A stretch of 63,268 nt of DNA, filler included, from Trichosphaerium sp. ATCC 40318 (Eukaryota > Protista > Tubulinea): the NCBI GenBank assembly GCA_038496445.1. It is 3 parts of 3 records of this genome, joined end to end, with 100 filler letters (N's around TTAATTAATTAA, not from the genome) between each part and the next. Parts side by side here need not be neighbours in the genome. Positions count along the whole stretch, not along the records: positions 15,653 to 39,274 come from JALMLS010000241.1; 2 more parts are not named here. One strand, 5' to 3'. Both the position numbers and the translations under genes were made by a program. This document shows, in pieces, positions 15,653 to 39,274 of this stretch (positions within the stretch are counted from its first letter, which is position 1; the number at the start of each line of letters is the position of its first letter). The notes below the pieces were generated by a model, which worked only from the letters and a program-made list of their open reading frames with translations, searched no databases and had not been told where the DNA came from.

Positions 15653-18600
15653 GTCTCCTTTTCTTTTTCTAATACATTCAACACCTGTTTCACACTATGG
15701 TCTACTTCAAATGAGTAATCTTTATGCCATAATGACACTGCTTCCATTCTTCGTGATGAGTATTGATTAATACTATCATCCGATATAGCATTTAACTCTT
15801 CTTGTGCCCACGGAGCTCTTGTCAGTGCATCCGCGTCTGTATGGGTGACACCCTTTTTATACACTAACACGAAATCAAATTGTTGTATTTTTAACAGCCA
15901 CCTTGCTAACATAGGTCGAGGATTGGGTAAATCCTGTAAATATTGTAGCGGTTTGTGATCTGTGTATACAATCAATTTGAATTTAGCAAACGACAGGTAT
16001 CCTCTAAACTCTTCTAACGCTAACACGATACCCAACATCTCTCTCTCAATGGTGGAATAATTCTTCTGTGGTTTAGAGAATGTCTTGCTGAAATATGCAA
16101 TGACATGTTCTCTTTTACCATGTCTCTGTACTAACGTTGCACCAGCTGCTACATTGGAGGCATCTACATGAATTTCAAACAGCTTTGAGAAGTCTGGATG
16201 CTTCAAGATAGGTGGTGATGACAACAGGTCTTTGATTTTCTCATAAGCCTTTTGTTGTTCTTTACCCCAGTACCACTTGATGTCTTTGTTCCGTAATCGA
16301 TTGATCGGTTCTACAATCTGTGCGTATTTCGGTACAAATTTGCGATAATACCCTGTAAGGCCTAAGCAGCGAGCTACTTCTTCTTTACTTGTAGGTCTTT
16401 TCGCTCTTTGTATTGCATCCGTTATACGAGGATTTGTAGATATCCCATCAGCGCTCACGATATGGCCCAAAAACTCAACTTGATCTTTAAATAAAACTGA
16501 TTTCTTCGCCTTCAATTTCATGTTATGTTCCTCCAATCTCTTGAACAATAATTTCAGGTGTACTAGATGTTCTTCAAAGGTATTACTGAACACTATAATA
16601 TCGTCGACGTAACAAAGAGGTGATAATAATATAATGAGCAACCATACAGTGAGTACGTACACTGCTTTGACAGCCCTCCCTTTAACTACGTCTGCTCCCT
16701 ATTTTTCCCTTTTCATATCTACCCTATCCTATTTTTTATGTAGATTTCAAAAAAGTTGGTTTGGTCAAATTTAGTCAAATACACACGAAATTATCTAACT
16801 TTTTTTATTTTTTAGTTTGGTTTTTTTACTTTATATTGTAGATTTTTTTGTTGTTTTATTAAATTGTTTGAGTTATGTAGTTGGTCCTATAAGTCTTACT
16901 TTCTGTTCTTTCTAGCCTTTCTTTTTCCTTTTTTACCCTTGGTGGTTTTTGGTAGATCAATTATTGTACCTTGCATCTTTTTGGTTCTTAAATCTTTGGC
17001 TTTAGGACATGGAGGTAATATTGGCTTCACTATTTCATTTTCTTCCAATAGCTGCTCTTCTGTATATAACAAATACTCACTTGAAGTCATCATATATGCT
17101 GGATATTTAGGCTTGTAACTTTCTTTTGATGCTTTGTCATGGGTCCTTAACAAGCAAGTAGGAAATTGTATAATTGTACCATCTTCTTTTTTCCAATAAT
17201 GACCAACACATTGATAACAATCTGCATATTTAACTCTGTTGTGACATCTAAAAAAAACAATGTTAACATCATTTAAAAAACCCTTTCACTTACATTTCTC
17301 TATGAGCATTCATAAATTCAGGCTCCAATGTTTGATGCCAGGGATTCACACACCAACCATTGCCACATTTATGAGAATAATGTATATCTCCTCTTTCAAA
17401 CTCATTGAAAAACACCCATTTTCCTCTTTCTCTGTCATACACTTCCATATCAAAAAAGTACCAGAACAAAAACTGCACAATGTACATAGAAAGCCTGGTT
17501 TGCATACTTGACCAATCAACCATAGGTCTATTACCCTCTGCACAAAACTTGTCACTTCTCCAACATTCATGCTTGTTGAGTTGGCAGTCAGGAGAAATTT
17601 TGCATTTTAATCTCCAACCTTCTATTTGATCTACACCGTGGGTACCTTTTAATATGTCCACATGTCCTTTTGTCAAAGCTCTGCAGGTCTTGACTCTTTT
17701 GGTTTTTTTATCTCTTTTCAATTTAGTGAATACAGGAGAGAACATTTTGCTTCTAAACTCATCTACATAATCAGAGTGTATTGTTGGCAAGGTATAATCT
17801 CTTGTACTAGAAGGGGTCTTTCTTTTGGCAGGAGAAGAGACAGACCTCTTTCTTTTTTTTGGAGAGGCGGATTTAGATCTGGTTCTGGAAGCAGGTAGAG
17901 ACATGATGTTGCAGTTGTATAAAAGTAAGTTTTATGGTATATAATAAAATTGATATATGTGGAATGCAACAGTAGTAAAATAGAAATGGGAATTTTTAAG
18001 TAATCCACCCTGTTTTCCTATGGGAAAAGTAGACGGAAAAACTCTTCCTTAATTCCCATTGAATTTATATGAAATTCCATAAGTATTACCCATAGAATTC
18101 TTAAAGTATTACTTTTGGAATTGTGTATGTATTTTATATAGAATTCTCTATGTATTCTTTATAGCATTTCTTAATGTATTTTTTGTAGATTTCAATAAAA
18201 AATACTTTTTCAATTACACAAAATATTTGTACTATTTCGATACTTTGGTTCAGATTTAGTGCAAAGTCATTTTATTTATTGATCATAATTTCATTACAAA
18301 ATACAAACATCCTAAATAACACGTACAAGTTAAATACATCATGTCTTCATAAACGAAAGAAGTAATTTGATCGCATTTGGTTTTGAGAGCCTGAACAATT
18401 GTTAATGCGTTTGTAAATGCTAAATTAAGAATGCGTAGGGTTTTTTGATAAATTAAGTGGAAATAAGCTTTAAAAACAACGTACTTGGAGTTAATGCTTT
18501 AAATACATTCTTTAATGGTGTAATAAGGCTGTTGCAATGCTTTAATCATCCTAAAACAGATAAGTAAGAGATATTTATGTTTAAGTGATTTTCCAAACCA

Positions 18601-21600
18601 CCTAAAACGTGTTCTCCGTTACTTTTTGGATTAACGCACTTTAACCTGTACCATTGGTTTTTGCACCTTTAATAATAGCATGTGGATATTGTTCACTAGA
18701 AAAACCTATGTACCTAAGGTGTCGATGGTTTTTTGCAAATATAAAACTAAACCCTAACCCTAACTTAATTTGTACTTTCATAAACCTCAACCCTAGCCCT
18801 AACCCTAACCCTAACTAAATTAGTACATTATTTGGTGGATTTTGTACAATAATTCTGAAAATTCTGTATTTAAGGGAATATTATGGTAATTCTATCAAAA
18901 ATCCCGCTATAAAAAAAAATAAAAATAAGAATTCTTCACAAATTACCTTAAAAATCCCTAAAACAAAGGAATTTAGTGGGATTTATATCCAAAATCCCGT
19001 TTTCATTTTACCACTGAAAGTGGTACACAATGTGGAATGGAATGCAAAATGGTACACAATGTGGAATGGAATGCAAAATGTAGAATGCAAAATGTGGAAT
19101 GCAGAATGCAGTGTGGTGCACAATGTGGAATGCAGTATGGTGCACAATGTGGAATGCAATATGGTACACAATGTGGAATGCTCAATGTGAAATACAAAAA
19201 GAGACACAATGTAGAATGCAAATAAAGAATAAAAAAAAAAAAAAAAAAAAAGAGAATAAAAAAGAAATGAAAAAAGAAGTGTTGAGCAAGGAGTTAATAC
19301 CTAATATACAGCGCTCATATTTATACACCAGATAGCTACAAGCATAGAGAATAAACTGCAAAAAAAATGAATCAAAAAGGAAGGATAGGGTAGATATGAA
19401 AAGGGAAAAATAGGGAGCAGACGTAGTTAAAGGGAGGGCTGTCAAAGCAGTGTACGTACTCACTGTATGGTTGCTCTATTATATTATTATCACCTCTTTG
19501 TTACGTCGACGATATTACCTCAAAGACACGTCTGCCAGAGTAGGCCTGACAACATCAGGTTCATATGTCTTTGGAAAGTTGCTTGCGCATTCTTAAGACC
19601 AAAGGGCATACCGACGCACTCGAACAGACCCCACTCTGTGGCAAAGGCTGTCTTATCAGCATCATTTGCATGCATTCGGATCTGCCAATACCCGGAGATT
19701 GCATCAAACGTACTGAAGAACTTAGCTCCAGCCAGTGCATTCATTAGATCATTTACTCTTGGTAACAGATGTACGTCCTTTTTCGTCACCTTGTTGAGTT
19801 GTCTGAAGTCAATGCAGAATCTCCATTCTCCATTGTTCTTTTTAACTAACACAACTGGTGAGGACCACTCTGATTTGGAGTACTTGATCTGTTTGTTCTC
19901 TAACATCTTTTCTATTTCTGCTTTTGCGATTTCTCTTTGTTTTGGGTTCATTCTTCTGTACGGCATACTAACCGGTCTTGTGCCTTTGTCAACAGGTATT
20001 CGGTGTTGTATTCCTTTAACCGCTCCTGTTTCCTTCAATGAATCAACAAATATGTGTTGGTAGCTCGCCATGAATTTGAAAGCTTGCAACTTTTGTTTCT
20101 CAGTGAGTCGGTTCCCGTTGACTTTGAATCTCTTTTGAGCTGCCTTGACATCTTCCATTGTTACATTTGCACACGCCCTTGCTATGTCTTTCTTTTGTTT
20201 AGCATAGTCAAAGTTCAATGAGCATACTTCTTCTCCTACACCCAACGCAGCAAAACTCGCAATGTTATACTTCGCTGGTATCCTCCTCTCTACATTACTC
20301 GGGTTCATGACATGCACTCTAACCATTCTTTTCCTAGCTCTGTCCACTGATCGACACAGCTGTAGACCCAGGTCATTCAATAATGCCGCATGTCCACCTT
20401 TATCTTCCAGTCTATGTGGTTCTACTATACCCACTTTTTCGTTGACTGGAATAGATAATTTGGCCACGAACGTACATTGTGAGTAAGCTGGTATCTTAAC
20501 AGCGTTAGTTGTCAACACGTTAGCAAACTCTGTCCTTCTATCATTCACTTGAGTACACGTGATAGGTGTCTCATCACCCTTGTAGTTGTGCAACAACAAC
20601 CGACCATAATCCAAGCACATGCCCCATCTCTTCAGCATTGTTGTTCCTAACAATATCTTGTACTTGAAGTTGTTGATGACAAAGCATGTCACAGGCATAG
20701 GCGTCTTACCGATCGCAATGGTTAACTTGATCACTCCCATCGATGGTATTTGTTTGTTATCTGCTGTGTAAATAGGTGGTGATGTCTTAGGTATAATACT
20801 TTTAGTCAGTCCCAACCTTTTTACCAGTCTTGAATCAACAATACACATGGATGCTCCTGAATCCATCAACGCATTAACTCTAACACCATTTACACTCATG
20901 TGTGCCTTTGTAACTGTATAATGAAATGCTTTGTTCTCACTCAACTCCTCACACATGTTCAAGAAATTCGCTGAAGTAGACAAGTGACATGACTGATCAA
21001 CTGAGGCCTTATACCAAAAACTTTTATTATCTCTTCTACTTCTACTCTTACTTCTACTCCTACTCCTGTTACGACTCCTATCACGGCTTCTCTCGCGACT
21101 CCTCTCACGTCTCCTGTCACGGCTTCTGTCACGGCTCCTATCACGGCTCCTGTCACGCCTGTCGCACCTACCATGTCGGTCGCGATCATCTCTTCTATCT
21201 CGGCGATCTTCCTCATCTCTGTCGTATCCATCATCATCTTCTTCACCATCTACATCCATCGCGTTCAGTTGTAGTCGCGTAGGACACACATCTTGAAAGT
21301 GCCCAATGCCTCCACATCTGTAACACTTGATGTTGATACGTGGTCTCGGTTGAGAAGGTCTACGATATTTGTCAATCTGATCTTGACCTTTGTAGCCTCT
21401 CCTTTTACTGTAGCCACTGTATCCACCATATCTGTGACCACCACCATGTTTACTGTGACCACCACCACTGTCTTGATGTTGTTGATCACGCCACTGTGCT
21501 TGTTGAGCATTGCGGTCATAATCATCCGTACATCTTCTCTTCGTGTCTCGCTCGTCATCATTGTCGGAGCCGTTTCTCTTCGTTGCCACCGAGTTGAGCG

Positions 21601-22534
21601 TCTCTATCCTTGATTTCTCTATCGCCGCCTTCAATCGTTTGCGTTCTTCATCTTTCCTCTTCTGTTCTGTGTCGCCCAGCTCCTTCTTATATGTGTACCA
21701 AGATGCTATCTTGTACACTGCAGCCATGGACGTATCTTGCAGCTTTTCTTTAAGCGTATCCACAATATACTGTCTCATCTCTGTACCAACACACTTCAGA
21801 AACGCTGTTGCCTTCTCCTTGTCGGTCATCATCGCCTTATCCGCCAAACTGAGAAAGTATTCATAAAATTTGGATACATTCTGGTTTTCTTGGATACACA
21901 TTTGAGCTACTTTCTCTTTAGCTCACATCATGTTGACCACCGTCTGGAAGCTATCCAATAAACTATAGATTGCCAATGTGTAATTCTTGTTGAACTTCAA
22001 ACTCCTGATGACTCGATGGGCTCGTCCTTTTATCCGAGAGTGTAGTACATACACGCATGCTTCTTGATTGCATTTGAACGTTGTACAGTACCTTTGCATC
22101 CTCGCCAAAAACTCTTCCAACTCTCCATGATCGTTGGAAAACACCTCAATGTCGGTTATCTTCTTACATCGTTGTGGTGTGCGATCTTTCTTGTACCAAT
22201 CCACTCCAACCGGTTTTTCTTCGCTGTCGTAGACCAAATGCGGCATCAAGCGTAAAACGGTGTTACGTTCTACATCATTGATATCCGTCAGTGATTCTAA
22301 CCGATCTAAGCGCCTTTTCTCTTCTTTCACACTATTTAATCTTCCTGACCTTTCCGATGATGAAGCTGAGCTACTGCTGCTCTCATCCGGTGTATCAGGT
22401 CCCTTCTCTTCCTTTTCTCTGTTGTCCTTTCGATCTTTGTGTTTACCCTTTTCTGGCTTCTTTTCGCTTTCTTCTTTGCCCTTTCCTTCATCCGTATCAC
22501 TATCCTCTTCCCCTTCTTTTTCGGAGCTTTTGGT
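15653..22534 (-). repeat. 6.9-kb inverted duplicate of 23382-30264 (probable fold-back chimera)
   Basis: All ORF coordinates mirror with sum 45917 and give identical proteins; the only difference noticed is a 1-bp homopolymer indel near 22510; runs into the contig end. Confidence 0.95.
16896..17904 (-). CDS. His-Cys box homing endonuclease (mirror copy of 28013-29021)
   Basis: Translation identical to the + strand copy. Confidence 0.8.
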
Positions 22535-23100
22535 ACTAAGTGTTTGAATCTATTCGTGTTAGCTTCAATAGTACGATTAGTATTGCGTGTCGTACCCAAC
22601 TTGTTGTAAGACTTCAGGAGGAGAAGCAGCGTGTGATTCAATAAAGATCCAAACTTGCCTCAAAAAAGCTTCAGCACCAGAAGCGTGCACTGCAAAGGTA
22701 CCAACTCCAACAGCTGCGCTTATGCCGCCAGTAAGAACACCGACCTAATGTGGGTTAGTTTTTTGCAGCCACGTTTTTGCATAAGTAAGTTAAAGATGTC
22801 GCGTGTCGTTTTAGGTTTCAAAAAAACTTGTGATATTTTTTTCACCACTAACACGTGGCATAATTACAAGAGAGTGCATGAACAAAAAAATGGACAAAGA
22901 AGCGTGTACGTACCACTGTGCCTGTTACTACTTTTATGGTGGCGTAGGAGTGAATTGTTATTGTCATACTTCCATCCGAAGCCGTTGTAAACGTTGCTTT
23001 GAATTCAGGCTAAACGGACATTAGACACTCTACTCAATATGCCTTTACTGATAAAGGCGCTACGAACGCTTTGACTTTTTTTTTTTTCCAATAACTATTA

Positions 23101-23191
23101 TGTAAGGAGTAAATAATGTAACTTAATGTACATGAGCTCACTTAGAGGAGAATAAATTAGTTGATATCACGTGACGGTTTTAGTCTTTACA
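23101..23191 (+). repeat. 5' LTR (91 bp)
   Basis: TGTAAGG...CTTTACA, identical to 32237-32327. Confidence 0.95.
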
Positions 23192-23194
23192 TTT

Positions 23195-23212
23195 TGGCGA
23201 CAGACGCGTAGA
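23195..23212 (+). promoter_or_regulatory. Primer binding site (TGGCGACAGACGCG...); tRNA identity not determined
   Basis: TGG-initiated sequence 3 nt after the 5' LTR. Confidence 0.7.
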
Positions 23213-23220
23213 TTTGAACC

Positions 23221-26200
23221 ATGTCTAAACGGGGAAGTAAAAAGGAGAAGAAATCAATTTATGTACCTAAGAAAAAGCAAGATGATATTGAAAAGGAGAT
23301 GTTAGAAGAGATAGAAGCGGCAAAAGATAAGAAGGAACGTCGAAAGGGAGATTCAAATAGTGAACAAAAACTAAAAGGGAAACCAAAAGCTCCGAAAAAG
23401 AAGGGGGAAGAGGATAGTGATACGGATGAAGGAAAGGGCAAAGAAGAAAGCGAAAAGAAGCCAGAAAAGGGTAAACACAAAGATCGAAAGGACAACAGAG
23501 AAAAGGAAGAGAAGGGACCTGATACACCGGATGAGAGCAGCAGTAGCTCAGCTTCATCATCGGAAAGGTCAGGAAGATTAAATAGTGTGAAAGAAGAGAA
23601 AAGGCGCTTAGATCGGTTAGAATCACTGACGGATATCAATGATGTAGAACGTAACACCGTTTTACGCTTGATGCCGCATTTGGTCTACGACAGCGAAGAA
23701 AAACCGGTTGGAGTGGATTGGTACAAGAAAGATCGCACACCACAACGATGTAAGAAGATAACCGACATTGAGGTGTTTTCCAACGATCATGGAGAGTTGG
23801 AAGAGTTTTTGGCGAGGATGCAAAGGTACTGTACAACGTTCAAATGCAATCAAGAAGCATGCGTGTATGTACTACACTCTCGGATAAAAGGACGAGCCCA
23901 TCGAGTCATCAGGAGTTTGAAGTTCAACAAGAATTACACATTGGCAATCTATAGTTTATTGGATAGCTTCCAGACGGTGGTCAACATGATGTGAGCTAAA
24001 GAGAAAGTAGCTCAAATGTGTATCCAAGAAAACCAGAATGTATCCAAATTTTATGAATACTTTCTCAGTTTGGCGGATAAGGCGATGATGACCGACAAGG
24101 AGAAGGCAACAGCGTTTCTGAAGTGTGTTGGTACAGAGATGAGACAGTATATTGTGGATACGCTTAAAGAAAAGCTGCAAGATACGTCCATGGCTGCAGT
24201 GTACAAGATAGCATCTTGGTACACATATAAGAAGGAGCTGGGCGACACAGAACAGAAGAGGAAAGATGAAGAACGCAAACGATTGAAGGCGGCGATAGAG
24301 AAATCAAGGATAGAGACGCTCAACTCGGTGGCAACGAAGAGAAACGGCTCCGACAATGATGACGAGCGAGACACGAAGAGAAGATGTACGGATGATTATG
24401 ACCGCAATGCTCAACAAGCACAGTGGCGTGATCAACAACATCAAGACAGTGGTGGTGGTCACAGTAAACATGGTGGTGGTCACAGATATGGTGGATACAG
24501 TGGCTACAGTAAAAGGAGAGGCTACAAAGGTCAAGATCAGATTGACAAATATCGTAGACCTTCTCAACCGAGACCACGTATCAACATCAAGTGTTACAGA
24601 TGTGGAGGCATTGGGCACTTTCAAGATGTGTGTCCTACGCGACTACAACTGAACGCGATGGATGTAGATGGTGAAGAAGATGATGATGGATACGACAGAG
24701 ATGAGGAAGATCGCCGAGATAGAAGAGATGATCGCGACCGACATGGTAGGTGCGACAGGCGTGACAGGAGCCGTGATAGGAGCCGTGACAGAAGCCGTGA
24801 CAGGAGACGTGAGAGGAGTCGCGAGAGAAGCCGTGATAGGAGTCGTAACAGGAGTAGGAGTAGAAGTAAGAGTAGAAGTAGAAGAGATAATAAAAGTTTT
24901 TGGTATAAGGCCTCAGTTGATCAGTCATGTCACTTGTCTACTTCAGCGAATTTCTTGAACATGTGTGAGGAGTTGAGTGAGAACAAAGCATTTCATTATA
25001 CAGTTACAAAGGCACACATGAGTGTAAATGGTGTTAGAGTTAATGCGTTGATGGATTCAGGAGCATCCATGTGTATTGTTGATTCAAGACTGGTAAAAAG
25101 GTTGGGACTGACTAAAAGTATTATACCTAAGACATCACCACCTATTTACACAGCAGATAACAAACAAATACCATCGATGGGAGTGATCAAGTTAACCATT
25201 GCGATCGGTAAGACGCCTATGCCTGTGACATGCTTTGTCATCAACAACTTCAAGTACAAGATATTGTTAGGAACAACAATGCTGAAGAGATGGGGCATGT
25301 GCTTGGATTATGGTCGGTTGTTGTTGCACAACTACAAGGGTGATGAGACACCTATCACGTGTACTCAAGTGAATGATAGAAGGACAGAGTTTGCTAACGT
25401 GTTGACAACTAACGCTGTTAAGATACCAGCTTACTCACAATGTACGTTCGTGGCCAAATTATCTATTCCAGTCAACGAAAAAGTGGGTATAGTAGAACCA
25501 CATAGACTGGAAGATAAAGGTGGACATGCGGCATTATTGAATGACCTGGGTCTACAGCTGTGTCGATCAGTGGACAGAGCTAGGAAAAGAATGGTTAGAG
25601 TGCATGTCATGAACCCGAGTAATGTAGAGAGGAGGATACCAGCGAAGTATAACATTGCGAGTTTTGCTGCGTTGGGTGTAGGAGAAGAAGTATGCTCATT
25701 GAACTTTGACTATGCTAAACAAAAGAAAGACATAGCAAGGGCGTGTGCAAATGTAACAATGGAAGATGTCAAGGCAGCTCAAAAGAGATTCAAAGTCAAC
25801 GGGAACCGACTCACTGAGAAACAAAAGTTGCAAGCTTTCAAATTCATGGCGAGCTACCAACACATATTTGTTGATTCATTGAAGGAAACAGGAGCGGTTA
25901 AAGGAATACAACACCGAATACCTGTTGACAAAGGCACAAGACCGGTTAGTATGCCGTACAGAAGAATGAACCCAAAACAAAGAGAAATCGCAAAAGCAGA
26001 AATAGAAAAGATGTTAGAGAACAAACAGATCAAGTACTCCAAATCAGAGTGGTCCTCACCAGTTGTGTTAGTTAAAAAGAACAATGGAGAATGGAGATTC
26101 TGCATTGACTTCAGACAACTCAACAAGGTGACGAAAAAGGACGTACATCTGTTACCAAGAGTAAATGATCTAATGAATGCACTGGCTGGAGCTAAGTTCT

Positions 26201-26397
26201 TCAGTACGTTTGATGCAATCTCCGGGTATTGGCAGATCCGAATGCATGCAAATGATGCTGATAAGACAGCCTTTGCCACAGAGTGGGGTCTGTTCGAGTG
26301 CGTCGGTATGCCCTTTGGTCTTAAGAATGCGCAAGCAACTTTCCAAAGACATATGAACCTGATGTTGTCAGGCCTACTCTGGCAGACGTGTCTTTGA
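23221..26397 (+). pseudogene. gag-pol 5' part: Gag, CCHC zinc knuckle, RD/RS repeat, aspartic protease, N-terminal RT; in-frame TGA at 23992-23994
   Basis: ORFs 23221-23994 and 24016-26397 are in the same frame; CYRCGGIGHFQDVC, LMDSGA, WRFCIDFRQLN, MPFGLKNA. Confidence 0.92.
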
Positions 26398-26695
26398 GGT
26401 AATATCGTCGACGTAACAAAGAGGTGATAATAATATAATAGAGCAACCATACAGTGAGTACGTACACTGCTTTGACAGCCCTCCCTTTAACTACGTCTGC
26501 TCCCTATTTTTCCCTTTTCATATCTACCCTATCCTTCCTTTTTGATTCATTTTTTTTGCAGTTTATTCTCTATGCTTGTAGCTATCTGGTGTATAAATAT
26601 GAGCGCTGTATATTAGGTATTAACTCCTTGCTCAACACTTCTTTTTTCATTTCTTTTTTATTCTCTTTTTTTTTTTTTTTTTTTTTATTCTTTAT

Positions 26696-26897
26696 TTGCA
26701 TTCTACATTGTGTCTCTTTTTGTATTTCACATTGAGCATTCCACATTGTGTACCATATTGCATTCCACATTGTGCACCATACTGCATTCCACATTGTGCA
26801 CCACACTGCATTCTGCATTCCACATTTTGCATTCTACATTTTGCATTCCATTCCACATTGTGTACCATTTTGCATTCCATTCCACATTGTGTACCAC
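26696..26897. repeat. Subterminal minisatellite, about 24-bp unit TGCATTCCACATTGTG(T/C)ACCA(T/C)A
   Basis: About 8 full or partial tandem units read directly. Confidence 0.9.
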
Positions 26898-27102
26898 TTT
26901 CAGTGGTAAAATGAAAACGGGATTTTGGATATAAATCCCACTAAATTCCTTTGTTTTAGGGATTTTTAAGGTAATTTGTGAAGAATTCTTATTTTTATTT
27001 TTTTTTATAGCGGGATTTTTGATAGAATTACCATAATATTCCCTTAAATACAGAATTTTCAGAATTATTGTACAAAATCCACCAAATAATGTACTAATTT
27101 AG

Positions 27103-27170
27103 TTAGGGTTAGGGTTAGGGCTAGGGTTGAGGTTTATGAAAGTACAAATTAAGTTAGGGTTAGGGTTTAG
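27103..27170 (+). repeat. Interstitial telomere-like TTAGGG repeats inside the element
   Basis: TTAGGGTTAGGGTTAGGGCTAGGGTTGAGG ... TTAGGGTTAGGGTTTAG. Confidence 0.85.
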
Positions 27171-28012
27171 TTTTATATTTGCAAAAAACCATCGACACCT
27201 TAGGTACATAGGTTTTTCTAGTGAACAATATCCACATGCTATTATTAAAGGTGCAAAAACCAATGGTACAGGTTAAAGTGCGTTAATCCAAAAAGTAACG
27301 GAGAACACGTTTTAGGTGGTTTGGAAAATCACTTAAACATAAATATCTCTTACTTATCTGTTTTAGGATGATTAAAGCATTGCAACAGCCTTATTACACC
27401 ATTAAAGAATGTATTTAAAGCATTAACTCCAAGTACGTTGTTTTTAAAGCTTATTTCCACTTAATTTATCAAAAAACCCTACGCATTCTTAATTTAGCAT
27501 TTACAAACGCATTAACAATTGTTCAGGCTCTCAAAACCAAATGCGATCAAATTACTTCTTTCGTTTATGAAGACATGATGTATTTAACTTGTACGTGTTA
27601 TTTAGGATGTTTGTATTTTGTAATGAAATTATGATCAATAAATAAAATGACTTTGCACTAAATCTGAACCAAAGTATCGAAATAGTACAAATATTTTGTG
27701 TAATTGAAAAAGTATTTTTTATTGAAATCTACAAAAAATACATTAAGAAATGCTATAAAGAATACATAGAGAATTCTATATAAAATACATACACAATTCC
27801 AAAAGTAATACTTTAAGAATTCTATGGGTAATACTTATGGAATTTCATATAAATTCAATGGGAATTAAGGAAGAGTTTTTCCGTCTACTTTTCCCATAGG
27901 AAAACAGGGTGGATTACTTAAAAATTCCCATTTCTATTTTACTACTGTTGCATTCCACATATATCAATTTTATTATATACCATAAAACTTACTTTTATAC
28001 AACTGCAACATC

Positions 28013-29021
28013 ATGTCTCTACCTGCTTCCAGAACCAGATCTAAATCCGCCTCTCCAAAAAAAAGAAAGAGGTCTGTCTCTTCTCCTGCCAAAAGAAAGA
28101 CCCCTTCTAGTACAAGAGATTATACCTTGCCAACAATACACTCTGATTATGTAGATGAGTTTAGAAGCAAAATGTTCTCTCCTGTATTCACTAAATTGAA
28201 AAGAGATAAAAAAACCAAAAGAGTCAAGACCTGCAGAGCTTTGACAAAAGGACATGTGGACATATTAAAAGGTACCCACGGTGTAGATCAAATAGAAGGT
28301 TGGAGATTAAAATGCAAAATTTCTCCTGACTGCCAACTCAACAAGCATGAATGTTGGAGAAGTGACAAGTTTTGTGCAGAGGGTAATAGACCTATGGTTG
28401 ATTGGTCAAGTATGCAAACCAGGCTTTCTATGTACATTGTGCAGTTTTTGTTCTGGTACTTTTTTGATATGGAAGTGTATGACAGAGAAAGAGGAAAATG
28501 GGTGTTTTTCAATGAGTTTGAAAGAGGAGATATACATTATTCTCATAAATGTGGCAATGGTTGGTGTGTGAATCCCTGGCATCAAACATTGGAGCCTGAA
28601 TTTATGAATGCTCATAGAGAAATGTAAGTGAAAGGGTTTTTTAAATGATGTTAACATTGTTTTTTTTAGATGTCACAACAGAGTTAAATATGCAGATTGT
28701 TATCAATGTGTTGGTCATTATTGGAAAAAAGAAGATGGTACAATTATACAATTTCCTACTTGCTTGTTAAGGACCCATGACAAAGCATCAAAAGAAAGTT
28801 ACAAGCCTAAATATCCAGCATATATGATGACTTCAAGTGAGTATTTGTTATATACAGAAGAGCAGCTATTGGAAGAAAATGAAATAGTGAAGCCAATATT
28901 ACCTCCATGTCCTAAAGCCAAAGATTTAAGAACCAAAAAGATGCAAGGTACAATAATTGATCTACCAAAAACCACCAAGGGTAAAAAAGGAAAAAGAAAG
29001 GCTAGAAAGAACAGAAAGTAA
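28013..29021 (+). CDS. His-Cys box (His-Me finger) homing endonuclease, 320 aa; exons 28013-28623 and 28670-29021
   Basis: 46-nt GTAAGT...TTTAG intron; spliced product ECW...SHKCGNGWCVNPWHQTLEPEFMNAHREICHN...CYQCVGH...PTC matches the SHxCx4CxNPxH-E-N-R-C pattern of I-PpoI-family enzymes; basic NLS-like termini. Confidence 0.88.
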
Positions 29022-29304
29022 GACTTATAGGACCAACTACATAACTCAAACAATTTAATAAAACAACAAAAAAATCTACAATATAAAGTAAAAAAACCAA
29101 ACTAAAAAATAAAAAAAGTTAGATAATTTCGTGTGTATTTGACTAAATTTGACCAAACCAACTTTTTTGAAATCTACATAAAAAATAGGATAGGGTAGAT
29201 ATGAAAAGGGAAAAATAGGGAGCAGACGTAGTTAAAGGGAGGGCTGTCAAAGCAGTGTACGTACTCACTGTATGGTTGCTCATTATATTATTATCACCTC
29301 TTTG

Positions 29305-32071
29305 TTACGTCGACGATATTATAGTGTTCAGTAATACCTTTGAAGAACATCTAGTACACCTGAAATTATTGTTCAAGAGATTGGAGGAACATAACATGAA
29401 ATTGAAGGCGAAGAAATCAGTTTTATTTAAAGATCAAGTTGAGTTTTTGGGCCATATCGTGAGCGCTGATGGGATATCTACAAATCCTCGTATAACGGAT
29501 GCAATACAAAGAGCGAAAAGACCTACAAGTAAAGAAGAAGTAGCTCGCTGCTTAGGCCTTACAGGGTATTATCGCAAATTTGTACCGAAATACGCACAGA
29601 TTGTAGAACCGATCAATCGATTACGGAACAAAGACATCAAGTGGTACTGGGGTAAAGAACAACAAAAGGCTTATGAGAAAATCAAAGACCTGTTGTCATC
29701 ACCACCTATCTTGAAGCATCCAGACTTCTCAAAGCTGTTTGAAATTCATGTAGATGCCTCCAATGTAGCAGCTGGTGCAACGTTAGTACAGAGACATGGT
29801 AAAAGAGAACATGTCATTGCATATTTCAGCAAGACATTCTCTAAACCACAGAAGAATTATTCCACCATTGAGAGAGAGATGTTGGGTATCGTGTTAGCGT
29901 TAGAAGAGTTTAGAGGATACCTGTCGTTTGCTAAATTCAAATTGATTGTATACACAGATCACAAACCGCTACAATATTTACAGGATTTACCCAATCCTCG
30001 ACCTATGTTAGCAAGGTGGCTGTTAAAAATACAACAATTTGATTTCGTGTTAGTGTATAAAAAGGGTGTCACCCATACAGACGCGGATGCACTGACAAGA
30101 GCTCCGTGGGCACAAGAAGAGTTAAATGCTATATCGGATGATAGTATTAATCAATACTCATCACGAAGAATGGAAGCAGTGTCATTATGGCATAAAGATT
30201 ACTCATTTGAAGTAGACCATAGTGTGAAACAGGTGTTGAATGTATTAGAAAAAGAAAAGGAGACGGAACATATTAACTGGTCGGAGTGTCAGGCAAAAGA
30301 CCCTGAACTTACAGCATACATCCAGTTTTTAACTAAAGGAAAAGTCCCTCCATATGTCATGAAACAAAAGAACTTTAGAAGAGACGTGTTTGTTACCTTC
30401 ACTCGTAGATTAAAATATGACATGGATACAGGAGTACTGTACCATGTTAATAGATCACGAGGAGGGTTCGGAAACAAAGCACCATTACAAATAGTTGTAC
30501 CACAAGCTTTACAGCCATACATACTTCGACAATGTCATGATTTGCCTTTTGCAGGACATCTAGGATTTGTGAAGACATATGCTAAAGTAATACAACGATT
30601 TTATTGGGCAGGTGTATATTCAGACACAAAGGAATGGTGTCGTACATGTCGTTTGTGTCAGAGAGGTAAAATATCACGATTACCAAAACCAGGTTTTCTA
30701 GTGAATTTTCCGATACTGGAACCGATGCAATTGGTAGCTATGGATATTGTTGGACCCTTACCAGAGACACGTAAAGGCAACAAATATCTACTGGTGATCA
30801 CAGATCACTTTACTAAATGGGTAGATGTGTATGCAATACCTAGACATAAAGCAGTAGACGTAGCACCAATATTTGTGAAAGAGTTTTGTTTTCGGTATGG
30901 TATACCAAATAGAGTGTTGACAGATCAAGGAGGTGACTTTACAGGAGACCTCATGAAAGAAGTGTTCAAAATACTACGAATTGAAGGTAGTAGAACAGCA
31001 GCTTTCCATCCACAGACAGATGGACAGGTAGAAAGATTTAATCACACTCTAGTAGAAATTCTCAGAGCATTTGTTAATGAAAAACAAAATGACTGGGACT
31101 ACTGGGTACCATACGCGTTATATGCATACAGAACAGCAGTCCACCATGCAACTGGATATGCTCCATATGCAATGATGTTTGGCAGAGAACCCAGGTTACC
31201 CATAGATATGATATCTAACGAAATCATTGAGATTGAAGATAAATACAACATGGGTAATTGGGCAGAAGTGTTAGCACATAGATTGCGTTATGCATACCAA
31301 ATAGCGAGAGAACACATCCTCAAAGCTAAAAAGCAACAGGCGAAGTATTACAATGAACGAACACGTCATGTAAACTTTAAGCCAGGGCAGTTAGTGTATG
31401 TATTCGTACCTCAGGTGAAAGTAGGACAAAAACAGAAGTTAGCAAAACGATGGAGAGGTCCCTATGAGATTTTGGAGTTGATGGGTGCTAATACAGCATT
31501 GATCAATCTACCAGAAGCTAGTAGAATGAGTCGTGTCATTAACTTCAGACGCCTAAAACCATACATTGACTCATTTTTGAGACCGGAAGGGGCTCCGGAC
31601 AAAGATGAAGTAATGCGTAAGTTTGAAGGCAGAGAGGTAGAATTTCATGACCAAGACAGGAGTGAGAACTTCGTTGATGAGGAGGAGAGAGTATTAAGAG
31701 AGTCAGGAGATGAAATTACAGCCACGAAAGAGCTGACAAAGCAGATAAGAAGAGTGACGCAAGAAGATAAAGAGAGTAGGGAACCAGTAAAGGACTCACA
31801 AAGAGGATATGAACATCGGATAGACATCCTTTTAGAGCTATTGCGAGATGTGTTGCAATCAGCCAGGATAGTAACTAAAGATGATAACAAATCCATTGTG
31901 AAAAGTTTGATTGATAAAGGTAGCCCTTACATGCGAAGCAGTAGCACGCAGAAGGAGCTATTATCACAAATGTCCAAGTGTAATACAAATGGGAGTTTTA
32001 TTAAGTGGTTACAGAGGATTATAAAAGAAGAGAAAGAAGTGTTTAAAAGAGAGAGACGTTTACGAGACTAG
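29305..32071 (+). pseudogene. pol 3' part: RT (YVDD onward), RNase H, integrase (HHCC, DDE, GPY); no chromodomain seen
   Basis: YVDD, FLGH, DAS, YSTIERE, TDHKPL, H..AGH...CRLC, MDIVGP, TDQG, ERFN, WRGPY. Confidence 0.95.
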
Positions 32072-32218
32072 ATATAAATTGACCTCCATATTTATGGTTT
32101 AATGGTTGCTAAGGGTTTCCAATATCTCAGTCAAGTAAACAGCAAAGATAGAATTACGTGAACCAAAGAGTCATCTAAAACTGATGGAGTTCAACACTCT
32201 CACGTGAGGACACGCTCT

Positions 32219-32233
32219 AAAGAAAGAGGGGAG
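32219..32233 (+). promoter_or_regulatory. Polypurine tract
   Basis: AAAGAAAGAGGGGAG, 3 nt before the 3' LTR. Confidence 0.85.
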
Positions 32234-32236
32234 TTA

Positions 32237-32327
32237 TGTAAGGAGTAAATAATGTAACTTAATGTACATGAGCTCACTTAGAGGAGAATAAATTAGTTGA
32301 TATCACGTGACGGTTTTAGTCTTTACA
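32237..32327 (+). repeat. 3' LTR (91 bp)
   Basis: Identical to the 5' LTR. Confidence 0.95.
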
Positions 32328-33099: not shown

Positions 33100-36000
33100 G
33101 TCAAAAAATGGTCGTTGGTGGTATTAAAAATAGAAAACAAATTACAGTAAATGGAGTGCTGAAGCACAAGTTGATTATAATATGTCCAATTCGAATCAAG
33201 AGAAGAAACAACAGCAACTTGCAGTTTCTGGTATGTTTGTATTCCAATAAGATGTATCATAGTCCGTGGCTAACGTGTTCGTACAGTTATAGAAGCTCGA
33301 GGGCTATCTGGCAAGAAACAAGCCGGTGCGTACAAAAAAACCCAACTACGAGTAATTTTCGTTATAACCCCTTGCTCTAACACGATTTAGCGTCATGCAA
33401 TCCATTTTGTGTAGTTACATGCGGTAAAATGCATTTTAGAACGAAGGTAGCTAATCAAACCAACAAACCCGTTTGGAAGCAGCGATTTTTCTTGTACGTA
33501 TACGCCAAGCCTCTCGTGGTTTGTCTTTCAAAGCAATCAATTCCAAAAGCGAGAAAATGTCAACTTGAAGAAAACAAAAAGCAGAGAATTGTTGTTTGTA
33601 AGAATTTATACTACAAGCCTTTTCTATGAACACCACCCGATTGCATGCGCTTGTAATAATTTTTACTGACTGGTTGTTATTTTTGTAGCGCTGAAGACCT
33701 TGCCAAAAAAGACCAAACTCTCCTCGTTTCTGTATGGAATGGCGAAAGTAATTTTATGGGTCAAATAGAGTGCGCTATTTCGGAATTACCGGTAGAAAAC
33801 CCTGTTAAAGGATGGTACGAATTGCAAGGTCGGAATTTAGATGAGAAAGTAAGGGGTAAATTGCATCTGGAAGTGCTAATGAGCGATATGGTATGTATAG
33901 AGTGTTTGTGAGCGCCAAACGGCCGTTTTTCGTGAAGTGTCACAAATATCTTTTTTTTCTTTTATTCTCATTTTCTAACAGTCCAATTGTAGAGCGGTCG
34001 TAGTGCAGCGCGTAGCAAGGGTGTTACCATAGATACAGATGGTGGTGCTTATGGCACTAGTGGCGATGAAGGTAAATATTTTTCCTTTTTTTTTTTTTTT
34101 TTTGGAAAACTCTTTCGTAATTATTTTTGGCTTATTTGTTACGTAGCATCTGAAGGGGTTCAGGTTGCTTCTGCAGGTGGTACACCACGTAAAAGTAAAA
34201 AGAAATCAAAAAAAGATAAGAAAAAGTATAAACGTGGCAAGTCCAAAAGCAAGATCAAGAAATTGCGAATATTTAAACCTACAGGTATACCACTTATTTT
34301 TTTAACCCCTGTTTCTAACAAGAGTTTTTGTACAGAGTCCCAAACAGCTTCTACACGTTCACGTTCGCGTGCTTTCACAGCACCAACAGAGGGGTCTGCT
34401 AGAACTGGCACCAATAAAACTGCACATGCGGGTCACGATACTGATGGCGCAGGAGATACAACTGACGCTCATGAAGATTCTGATGATTCATCCTTCTCTG
34501 GCGATAAAACAAAAAAAGTAAAATATGACATGATGACACCTACTGCTCTTTCCGCGTACAAAGCCAAAGTTGATCAATTAGAACAACAACTCAAGGATCA
34601 GCGCTATTTATATGAAGAACAAAACCAATTAAAGGAAGAAAAAATAGCTAGGCTCACCACTGACCTAGAGAAGGAGCAACAACGTAACAACACCTTGAGT
34701 GTACGGATAGGATATTTTGTCAATGGCGTTATTTTTGCTTACGCAGTTCTGCTTAGAATAAGCTAGCACTTAAAGTGAAGCTCATCAGGGACTTAAAAAA
34801 TCGTACAGAAGAGTTACGCACTGAAGTAGATGAAGTGAAGCGTACTAGCATACATATAAGACGTGATTCGCTGCGTAAAGCGTCTTTGCGAGGGTTAGTA
34901 ATAACTAGTATTATTGGTTTGTAGTAAAAAAAAATATAACCGTTCGAGATAGGGTTCCACGTGATATCAACTCGTACTCGCAAGCTCATCCAGACTCAAG
35001 AATGTTACAAGAGCAGATTAAACGCGAACAAGAAACAACACGTAGTGTTGAAAAGCGATTGTTTGAAGTTATGGATAAGTACAATGCTCTAGTTGATATA
35101 ACCAACGAAAAAGCGCGGCAAGAAAGCATGCTTATGGGTAAGGTTCTCAGCCTAGAGTCAGAGCTTTCCATTGTACGTATTTCACATTTATTTTTGTTTT
35201 GTTTTCTTTTTGTTTTTTTTTTGGGGTGTAATTTGTTGAGTTAGGCACGAGAAGAAATTGAAGGAACTAAATACAAGCTCTCAACCAAAGACAAAGAGCG
35301 CATACAAAAAATATTCGATGACGGGCAATTGGCATTGCGCTCAGAGCTTGATGTGTCAAGAAAAGTACTTGGGCTTTTGTTTTTATTGAAAAAAAGCACC
35401 TCTCTATGGAACCCAGAGACTAACACACTATAGGCTCTAAGGCGTGAAGTAGCTTCTCTCCGAGCAGATACGCGTGAACCTGCAGCGCCTCGCGTTATTG
35501 TATCAGGGGCAAAACAACTGCGACCTAAATCTGGATTTGGTCCCACTGGTGGTATATCAGCTTATCACGTACACACGCCATTTTATATACCGCTATTCGT
35601 TGCGTGTTAAACTAACATAGATGTGTTTATAGGATGGTAGTGTGAGCGATAGTGGTCGTGTGGTGCACTCTGAAAAGTATATTATGCACCTGAAACAACA
35701 ACAAGAGACTCTCCAACAAAACTTGGAGTTTTTACTCAAAGAAAAGAATGAATTAGAGCATAAAAACGCTGGCATGTCAAATGAGTTGAAGCAATATAAG
35801 GTCATGGAGAGCGCTCGTTCTATGAAATCTGCTAATGGGAGTTTGTCTGATAGCATGCTAGATTCTGCACGGTACACTTTGTTTAATGAGCCTTAATGCT
35901 ATACGCTTTTTTTTTTGGTTCTTAATTTTCTTGCTTAATCACGTTATAGTCCTGCAGATGTTCGCGGCCGTAAGCTAAAGGCTATACCTATAAAGAATGA

Positions 36001-36467
36001 AGATAAGCGCAACAGGGTAAAGAAGCGCTTGGGTATGGGTATCTCTGCTAAGAGTACGTGCAAAAACTAATCACTTAGTATTGTACAAGCTAATGGTTTG
36101 TGTTAGTTAAGCTTGGCAAGAAAAAGCCTAGTGTAAAACCTAATGAGTCAGTACCTTGGCGTAAAACTCCAGCTACGATTGAAGACGATGAGCCTATTCT
36201 GCGACAGGGTAATCGTGTTGATTGGGATGTTGTTAGAAATGAAGCAGTATGTGCTATGAATCCAAAATGTGTATCTAACATAATGTGCTTAGTCGTACTG
36301 GTCTGGTGATGATTTCAATGACAGTGATGCAGGTGGGTATAGTAGTGGAGGTGCTTTTTTGGTGCTGCCAAAAGCATCTGATGAAGCATTTTCAGAAGAG
36401 TTTTCAGGAAGTGAAGAATCTGAAGAAGATGGCCGACTTTATGGTCGGCGATAGGCTTCCTATGTAG
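33100..36467 (+). CDS. C2-domain + coiled-coil protein, multi-exon (ends approximate)
   Basis: IEARGL, NPFCVVTCG..FRTKV..QTNKPVWKQRF, LLVSVWN..FMGQ, GWYELQ...VRGKLHL; long heptad-rich exons downstream. Confidence 0.7.
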
Positions 36468-36784: not shown

Positions 36785-36901
36785 CCTAATGATAATTAGG
36801 GTTGTAAACCTAACCCTAGCCCTAATTTACATTAGGGCTACAACCCTAACCCTAAATACAAACTAGGGTTCGTGCCCTAACCCTAATCGATATTAGGGCT
36901 A
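36785..36901. repeat. Telomere-like CCCTAA/TTAGGG cluster in mixed orientation
   Basis: AGCCCTAAT-TTAC-ATTAGGGCT and CCCTAAT-CGAT-ATTAGGG hairpins; CCCTAACCCTAA. Confidence 0.7.
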
Positions 36902-38709: not shown

Positions 38710-39235
38710 CAACAGCGAGCTTGCCGCGGCATTAGAACACATATATCACGTGTTCGCATGTCGCGCTAGTTGGCGGTTGGTTTTGGTACACAATTAAATT
38801 GTGTACTTTTTTTTTAATTTTTTTTTTGTTGTTTTGCTTTTTTTACAGACTGCGAGCTCGCTGTACAATTTTAAACACGCTTTTTACGTGTTCGTACATG
38901 ACTGCGAGCTCGCGGTCGGTTTTTGTACACATAAAAAGTGTCTACTTTTTTAAAAACCGTTTTTTTTTTTGAAAGTCTTGCTTTATAACTGACTGCTTGC
39001 TTGGTATATGGTATACAACACATGTTTATCGTGTTCGTACCTGACCTCGAGCTCGCGGTCGGTTTTCGTACACATAAAAAGTGTGTACTTTTTTAAAAAC
39101 CGTTTTTTTTTTTGAAAGTCTTGCTTTATAACTGACTGCAAGCTTGCCGTTGTGTATGTAACACGTTTTTAATGTGTTCGTTTCCGACCGCGAGCTCGAG
39201 GTCATACTTTCCGCACGGAAAAAACGTGTTTGTAT
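38710..39235. repeat. About 143-bp tandem repeat (3.5-4 units)
   Basis: GAGCTCG anchor at 38906, 39049 and 39192; two units nearly identical. Confidence 0.85.
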
Positions 39236-39274
39236 ATTTATTTAATGTGCCATCTTCTAATTACTCTTTTTAGC

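Follow-up and report, generated by a model that had tools for sequence, protein, structure and literature searches.

KolobokP elements are DNA transposons of seven animal phyla that combine a DDD/E transposase with an I-PpoI-like nuclease (Kojima & Bao 2022, PMC9587614). Their ends consist of terminal direct repeats of ~450 or ~660 bp, short terminal inverted repeats (TIRs) of 11–18 bp, and a TTAA duplication, and their non-autonomous families measure 1.7–3.3 kb; the elements show no target preference, and the nuclease apparently has no say in the integration site (PMC9587614). Nucleases with a His-Cys box are also encoded in group I introns of ribosomal DNA (rDNA). In myxomycetes, such intron-borne genes contain spliceosomal introns of 47–51 nt and AAUAAA signals; I-DsqI, I-NjaI, I-NanI, I-NitI, and I-DirII leave a 5-nt 3′ overhang, and I-PpoI leaves one of 4 nt (PMC9548176). 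Here, we describe a 2.9-kb insert in the genome of Trichosphaerium sp. ATCC 40318 (GCA_038496445.1), which interrupts the reverse transcriptase (RT) of a Ty3/gypsy long terminal repeat (LTR) retrotransposon and whose only gene is predicted to encode a His-Cys box nuclease. The window is a joined stretch of 63,268 nucleotides, of which the piece at 15653–39274 (JALMLS010000241.1) was analyzed; coordinates refer to the whole stretch. At about even confidence, we read the insert as a transposase-less copy of a TIR DNA transposon that carries an intact His-Cys box nuclease as an accessory gene. Such a combination of genes has already been described for KolobokP; the ends and target duplication of the insert differ, and its nuclease is very divergent. 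A preliminary description of this DNA had proposed an endonuclease-driven element and had kept as its alternative a DNA transposon that is non-autonomous and carries the nuclease as cargo, and this alternative is the best explanation here. Its premise that such enzymes are known from rDNA group I introns only has been overtaken, as KolobokP carries an I-PpoI-like nuclease (PMC9587614).

TIRs and a target duplication, the two marks of a cut-and-paste DNA transposon, were both present. Local alignment placed copies of CTTTG at 26392–26396 and 29300–29304, and the insert between them spans 26397–29299. These are exactly the coordinates that had been given for a 2.9-kb unit with ~113-bp TIRs and a 5-bp target duplication; the duplication can also be read as 6 bp, TCTTTG, when position 26391 is included. 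The inverted repeat pairs 26400–26535 with 29321–29187 over 136 nt, with a single 1-nt indel and zero mismatches. It contains a left TIR of 113 nt (26423–26535, plus strand), which starts GGTGATAATAAT..., and a right TIR of 112 nt (29187–29298, minus strand), and the two are the same except for an extra A at 26440. Each TIR harbors the near-palindrome CAGTGAGTACGTACACTG (26453–26470 and 29251–29268) with the perfect 8-bp core GTACGTAC, which could be a protein-binding site.

All the described elements of this anatomy were found, although the left end is not a plain TIR, which the preliminary description had not noticed. Twenty-six extra nucleotides (26397–26422; local alignment and BLAST) separate the left duplication from the left TIR: AGG at 26397–26399, followed at 26400–26422 by an exact inverted copy of 29299–29321. 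The copied segment is not element sequence but the right duplicated bases together with the next 17 nt of RT (codons L-C-Y-V-D-D-I). When the insert was compared with the rest of the piece by local BLAST, this 23-mer was the sole match apart from low-complexity matches. A derivation of the TIRs from gypsy sequence was rejected, the match being limited to 23 nt. An earlier stay of the element at the same site in the opposite orientation was likewise considered as the source of the inverted flank and was rejected, as the intervening AGG mismatches the gypsy flank. Judged from its sequence, the 26-nt segment looks like a repair scar. Whichever mechanism holds, it would illustrate cleanly, in a natural setting, how an inverted repeat extends into the flank via TIR-primed synthesis.

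The insertion point lies inside the Cys codon just before Y-V-D-D of the gypsy RT. The left half of pol (24016–26396, plus strand; open reading frame (ORF) calls and Pfam) comprises the zinc knuckle, the protease, and positions 1–141 of the RT profile RVT_1, and its reading ends ...W-Q-T-C-L, followed by a stop codon created at the insert junction. The right half (29300–32071, plus strand; ORF calls and Pfam) resumes with C-Y-V-D-D-I-I-V-F-S... and comprises RVT_1 positions 150–205, RNase H, and integrase. The split of RVT_1 and the break in the Cys codon thus bear out the earlier claim that RT is interrupted in the codon before YVDD. An 8-bp palindrome, CGTCGACG, is located at 29308–29315 in the right half of pol.

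The nuclease is the sole gene of the insert. No transposase or recombinase gene was present in the insert, and no ORF longer than 54 aa was found in it outside the tandem repeats other than that of the nuclease; no RNA family was detected across the whole piece using Rfam, and hence no group I intron. In these respects, the earlier reading of the insert as lacking a DDE transposase, a recombinase, and a group I intron core was correct. The gene was modeled as exon 1 (28013–28623, plus strand; supported by the PF05551 match and by alignments with I-PpoI and a relative, P0002), a 46-nt intron of the spliceosomal type in phase 2 (28624–28669, plus strand; GTAAGT...T-rich tract...TAG), and exon 2 with the stop codon (28670–29021, plus strand; coding 28670–29018, stop 29019–29021). 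The predicted product has 320 residues (203 codons, 1 split codon, and 116 codons), as had been proposed; the splice model draws on the sequence and on intronless relatives. P0002 and a second intronless relative, P0004, continue straight across the intron position, where their FPKCLL matches FPTCLL of exon 2, and this supports the model. TATA-like boxes lie 5′ of the gene, AATAAA occurs at 29057, 36 nt past the stop codon, and the reading frame is complete with no disabling changes.

The predicted protein is a His-Cys box (I-PpoI-type) nuclease and a member of PF05551 (zf-His_Me_endon), a family assignment that is sound at the sequence level. The exons were used as separate queries, and the scores for exon 1 cover about half of the intron-split domain; exon 1 alone reached 27.5 bits against a gathering cut-off of 27 (E = 4e-6, Pfam). 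The two exons together contain all the catalytic and zinc residues, in line with the complete His-Cys box reported previously. Exon 1 encodes a basic N-terminus (SPKKRKRS..PAKRK), a CW..FC motif, and the core Y-S-H-K-C-G-N-G-W-C-V-N-P-W-H-Q-T-L-E-P-E-F-M-N-A-H-R-E. Exon 2 encodes the residues of the second zinc site (C-x8-C-x2-C-x2-H...C) and a basic C-terminus, KGKKGKRKARKNRK. A core profile built from three sequences matched I-PpoI marginally (E = 0.14–0.37), aligning on S-H-x-C...C-x-N-P-x-H...E...N..R..C. The core residues aligned to I-PpoI were S177, H178, C180, C185, H190, E194, N199, and R202, with C205 as the first codon of exon 2; S97, H98 (catalytic His), H110, E114, and N119 (metal-binding Asn) of I-PpoI correspond to S177, H178, H190, E194, and N199. 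The conserved S-H, H, E, and N residues match the signature of the I-PpoI group (PMC9587614). The first putative zinc site would consist of the upstream C of E-C-W with C180, C185, and H190, and the second, which spans the splice junction, of C205, C214, C217/H220, and C235, with an insertion of about 14 residues relative to the spacing in I-PpoI. All eight Cys/His residues of the zinc sites and the catalytic residues can thus be accounted for in the predicted protein. The basic tails resemble nuclear localization signals, from which targeting to the nucleus is predicted. A PDB sequence search using exon 1 gave no match, and AlphaFold models of two homologues with shallow alignments were unusable (predicted local distance difference test scores of 36 and 32).

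The TIRs are identical but for one indel and abut a direct duplication, which favors an origin by transposase or integrase. Near-identical TIRs of 113 nt abutting a 5/6-bp duplication are the integration signature of DDE-type enzymes (transposases/integrases), and classical homing gives neither. In the transposon reading that we prefer, a transposase or integrase supplied in trans would recognize the 113-nt TIRs, make a staggered target cut of 5 bp (or 6 bp), and join the element, inactivating a gypsy copy that would itself have transposed recently. Later, or in the same event, the DNA would break exactly at the left TIR boundary. The freed 3′ end might then pair with the other TIR, copy 22–23 nt into the right flank, and be rejoined to the left flank; with the left flank still holding the first 3–4 nt of the element (AGG/T), the 26-nt scar would result. 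The scar begins exactly at the boundary of the TIR and the duplication, where a transposase cuts, and this favors a transposase as the source of the break; its templated inverted sequence would be explained by the pairing of the TIRs itself. By analogy with the proposal for KolobokP, the element probably profits from double-strand breaks that its nuclease makes at a specific sequence. The preference for a transposon is also based on the KolobokP precedent, namely the pairing of a transposase with a nuclease, non-autonomous families of 1.7–3.3 kb, and a nuclease that does not dictate the site, and on the absence of a ribozyme and of any other ORF in the insert, the location in a nest of transposons, and the sound family assignment of the nuclease.

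KolobokP and the insert are both eukaryotic DNA transposons, in our reading of the insert, with a small I-PpoI-like nuclease of the His-Cys box/His-Me finger type showing the S-H, H, E, and N signature; non-autonomous derivatives are of similar size (1.7–3.3 kb vs. 2.9 kb), and in both the nuclease is proposed to provide an added break-repair route beside ordinary transposition. Unlike KolobokP, the insert has neither a transposase nor long terminal direct repeats and ends in inverted termini of 113 nt. Its duplication is CTTTG or TCTTTG instead of TTAA and lies in a conserved catalytic motif, and its protein of 320 aa bears long basic tails. Membership in KolobokP was therefore rejected on the transposase, the terminal repeats, and the TTAA duplication. 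If the transposon reading is true, the insert would represent a second, structurally unrelated lineage of eukaryotic DNA transposons to recruit an I-PpoI-type nuclease, which would suggest that transposon ends have been combined with a site-specific nuclease repeatedly, as a strategy that is not peculiar to KolobokP.

Other TIR elements were compared as well. Polinton/Maverick-type and integrase-mobilized elements have TIRs of 100 bp or more, 5–6-bp duplications, and 5′-AG...CT-3′ termini. The insert begins with AGGT and ends with ACCT in the 5-bp reading, a likeness in end dinucleotides and duplication length alone; unlike Polinton/Maverick elements, it lacks a polymerase, integrase, capsid, or ATPase gene and measures only 2.9 kb. 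Non-autonomous TIR elements and miniature inverted-repeat transposable elements (MITEs) nested in LTR retrotransposons share with the insert the TIRs, a short duplication, the absence of a transposase, and a break-repair footprint at one end. Unlike the insert, they rarely keep a complete and apparently functional nuclease gene, and it is unusual for one TIR to be fused to an inverted copy, here of 23 nt, of the flank on the other side.

Several observations weigh against the transposon reading. No transposase-bearing relative and no second independent copy were found in the collections searched, which do not include the source genome, so that the term non-autonomous is an assumption, and the ends and duplication fit none of the superfamilies tested. 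The site, one codon from YVDD, does not look random, and the duplicated pentamer is the exact center of a GACGT-N9-ACGTC dyad, in which five of eight pairs show symmetry, a level reached at 3.1% of background positions, and the outer four do so without exception, as at 0.7% of background positions. The five-base duplication equals the stagger of I-DsqI, I-NjaI, I-NanI, I-NitI, and I-DirII (PMC9548176). An intact gene of 320 codons with an intron, tails resembling nuclear localization signals, and a poly(A) signal also exceeds what would be expected of dead cargo.

Much of this would suit an element driven by its own nuclease, which is a possible but clearly less probable explanation. The enzyme would make a cut with a 5-nt 3′ stagger in unoccupied gypsy RT, at the dyad that surrounds CTTTG. 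Entry of the element would follow either by break repair, being copied from an occupied gypsy copy so that it homes between paralogous copies, or as a free copy captured by end joining, with both overhangs kept to yield the 5-bp duplication; a retrotransposon family would be selectively inactivated as the outcome. We regard as slightly more doubtful the specific form in which the nuclease is a homodimeric mobility enzyme that cuts the GACGT-N9-ACGTC dyad with a 5-nt stagger at CTTTG, and the TIR element is installed by break repair or end capture, spreads among gypsy copies, and kills each RT. No catalytic or zinc residue is missing and the gene looks fit for expression, the duplication has the length of the pentanucleotide overhang of five characterized His-Cys enzymes, and its bases are centered in the dyad, as a homodimer would want. 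Moreover, the targeted motif is more conserved than any other in this multicopy sequence, the classic choice of homing endonucleases, and the scar at the left junction is of a type that synthesis-dependent break repair can leave. However, long perfect TIRs serve no role in homing, and we know of no homing element that has them. Recombinational homing leaves no duplication, symmetric targets and 5-bp duplications equally fit DDE enzymes, and the remarkable site was picked after the fact. Both gypsy copies in the piece are occupied, which is a weak argument for the nuclease, as the two are mirror images of one locus. The KolobokP nuclease does not set the insertion site (PMC9587614). Copies of the target half-site were looked for inside the element, and none was found. 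A single locus cannot tell transposase-driven from nuclease-driven insertion.

If the nuclease does pick the RT site, this would be homing outside organelles, rDNA, and inteins, and no earlier homing-type element would have had TIRs or a multicopy target that is nuclear and protein-coding. Its nuclease would be one that in nature attacks the catalytic core of a retrotransposon family, with a DNA parasite of a retroelement as a new tier of parasite on parasite; from the viewpoint of the host, it would act as an anti-retrotransposon drive. The enzyme would also be compact and natural, with a defined target of 17–19 bp.

The insert was further compared with homing endonuclease genes of group I introns. 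The rDNA-intron enzymes (I-PpoI, I-DsqI, I-NjaI, and I-DirI/II) share with the insert protein the PF05551 domain, the catalytic His/Asn, and the zinc ligands, and the myxomycete genes resemble the insert gene in having a small spliceosomal intron (47–51 vs. 46 nt) and an AAUAAA signal. Most of these enzymes leave a 5-nt 3′ overhang, and the insert has a 5-bp duplication. They reside inside self-splicing group I introns in the rDNA of protists and fungi and spread with neither TIRs nor duplications, whereas the insert has TIRs and a duplication, no ribozyme, and a retrotransposon coding gene as its target. A homing endonuclease gene of a group I intron was rejected on the lack of any Rfam family in the piece and on the flanks, which are RT coding sequence. 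Homing elements insert precisely, with no duplication or terminal repeats; the insert, with its 5/6-bp duplication and 113-nt TIRs, does not fit this definition.

Relatives of the nuclease are few. A word-index homologue search using exon 1 gave no match, and in a full HMMER scan of 1.84 billion representative proteins, P0002 was the sole real relative of exon 1 (34% identity over 101 residues, pairwise E = 9e-13); the other two matches were bacterial or phage multi-HNH proteins and were dismissed. A word search with P0002 added P0004 only, with P0007 and P0008 as cluster members. P0002, P0004, and P0007 scored 52 bits on PF05551 and were 83–100% alike among themselves. The contigs of the relatives (L001, L002, and L006–L011) are ~1.2–1.4 kb long, AT-rich, intronless, and mRNA-like, were obtained from environmental samples, and contain no TIRs and no genomic context; P0007 recurred without change in seven such samples. 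A common eukaryote that expresses this gene is the source to which these findings point. The called 328-aa product of L001 is probably short at its N-terminus, because its reading frame continues without a stop as far upstream as an ATG at position 28. The insert nuclease thus adds a very divergent branch to PF05551, with one eukaryote-like relative (P0002, 34%) among 1.84 billion proteins, plus P0004.

No other copy of the element was retrieved. Exact-protein look-ups using the exon-1 ORF, gag, the 793-aa left pol ORF, and the 891-aa right pol ORF gave no match in collections that exclude the source genome. Metagenomes scanned with the protein profile and a TIR 31-mer returned nothing, the 31-mer was absent from the prokaryotic genomes and viral contigs searched, and the profile gave three weak, short matches in viral contigs (27–44% identity). 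No further copy of the insert, empty site, or autonomous relative was retrieved from these collections, which do not contain the source genome, and the window likewise offers no gypsy copy free of the insert.

The finding of P0002, P0004, and P0007 only as mRNA-like contigs without TIRs bears on another explanation, that of captured or decaying cargo. The relatives may be ordinary cellular genes, and TIR elements often carry captured host fragments; the insert would then be a product of Pack-type capture or a remnant of internal deletion, its nuclease would play no part in mobility, and its position in RT would be due to chance. We consider this unlikely, as the gene is complete, with TATA-like boxes, an intron, AATAAA, and no disabling change, and all other known genes for His-Cys box proteins belong to mobile elements (PMC9587614, PMC9548176).

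The host element is a Ty3/gypsy retrotransposon at 23101–32327 on the plus strand, delimited by its LTR pair, flanking duplication, and Pfam domain order. Its LTRs (23101–23191 and 32237–32327) are 91 nt each, identical, and of the TG..CA type, and a 4-bp duplication, ATTA, flanks the element on both sides. A TGG-type primer-binding site, TGGCGACAG..., directly follows the LTR at the 5′ end, and the LTR at the 3′ end is preceded by a purine tract. The gag ORF (23221–23994, plus strand) is followed by Pfam domains in the order zf-CCHC, aspartyl protease, RVT_1, RNase H, integrase zinc-binding domain, rve, and SH3. Assignment to Ty3/gypsy was based on these terminal features and on the order of gag, protease, RT, RNase H, and integrase. 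The best protein match of the half containing gag, protease, and RT was a pseudoscorpion RT (44% identical); taken with a multi-exon coiled-coil gene downstream, this match alone would make the host look like an animal, and the contig has no likeness to human DNA. The gypsy element is a young copy disabled by this insertion alone, a reading that follows from the absence of any further stop or frameshift in gag or pol within the window.

Identical LTRs, the primer-binding site, and the purine tract imply that the interrupted gypsy could be mobilized in trans, and the insert gene and gypsy are on the same strand. The insert might accordingly be an inactive passenger, with the interrupted gypsy retrotransposed by the proteins of intact copies, and the presence of two occupied copies within one piece fits this idea. 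We consider it very improbable. The second copy lacks the 5′ LTR and the start of gag and is joined to host DNA as a fold-back, and it is not a product of retrotransposition; the 46-nt intron has been kept; and a passenger role would explain the spread of the insert, not its origin.

This second copy, which the preliminary description had not noticed, was identified by self-comparison at 15653–22535 on the minus strand. It mirrors 23382–30264, that is, gypsy from within gag to integrase, and contains the whole insert at 16618–19520. The two arms are reverse complements with one homopolymer difference (C4/C5) in 6.9 kb and are separated by a loop of 846 nt consisting of host DNA, the 5′ LTR, and the beginning of gag. 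The left arm is truncated where the piece starts, has no LTR, and joins host DNA abruptly at 22535/22536. The fold-back may represent an inverted duplication that is real, or else a chimera formed by amplification or within a read. A second independent insertion was considered and rejected, the mirror copy being the same locus folded back; it provides no independent evidence and is silent on how frequently insertion into the RT site has occurred.

Chimeric long reads and amplification chimeras typically look like this 6.9-kb fold-back, with its 846-nt loop and homopolymer discrepancy, from which it might be argued that the insert or its TIRs arose by mis-assembly. This has hardly any likelihood. 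The insert lies wholly within each arm, and its own TIRs, duplication, gene, nested element, and clean split of the ORF cannot be created by a fold-back.

The locus is a nest of transposons, in which gypsy holds the insert and the insert holds a MITE-like element. In the insert, a T-rich tract and a tandem array of 12/24-nt units (GCATTCCACATTGTG...) occupy 26638–26902 according to the repeat analysis, and the array picks up again at 27949–27961. Between these parts, a MITE-like element of ~1 kb (26903–27948), also absent from the preliminary description, interrupts the array. It has imperfect inverted ends of ~26 nt, CAGTGGTAAAATGAAAACGGGATTTT and CAGTAGTAAAATAGAAATGGGAATTTTT, with TT on either side; the ends begin CAGTGGTAAAAT and CAGTAGTAAAAT, and subterminal internal motifs are of the GGGATTTT/AAATTCC type. 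From these features, it looks like a nested MITE. Short TTAGGG-like runs occur in it at 27102–27167. The longest direct repeats in the insert were tandem units of 36 nt.

A cluster of TTAGGG/CCCTAA-like motifs in alternating orientation was also observed at 36790–36900 in apparent host intron DNA; it resembles the telomere-like stretch of the nested MITE, to which it may be related as another small element. Downstream of gypsy, several open exons coding for coiled coils at 34263–36310 (plus strand) probably belong to one multi-exon host gene, with weak Pfam matches below the cut-off (Asd-4, SOGA, and TPR-like). A tandem satellite with a unit of 143 nt, in about 3 copies that are 62–86% alike, extends from 38773 to 39246 and reaches the end of the piece.

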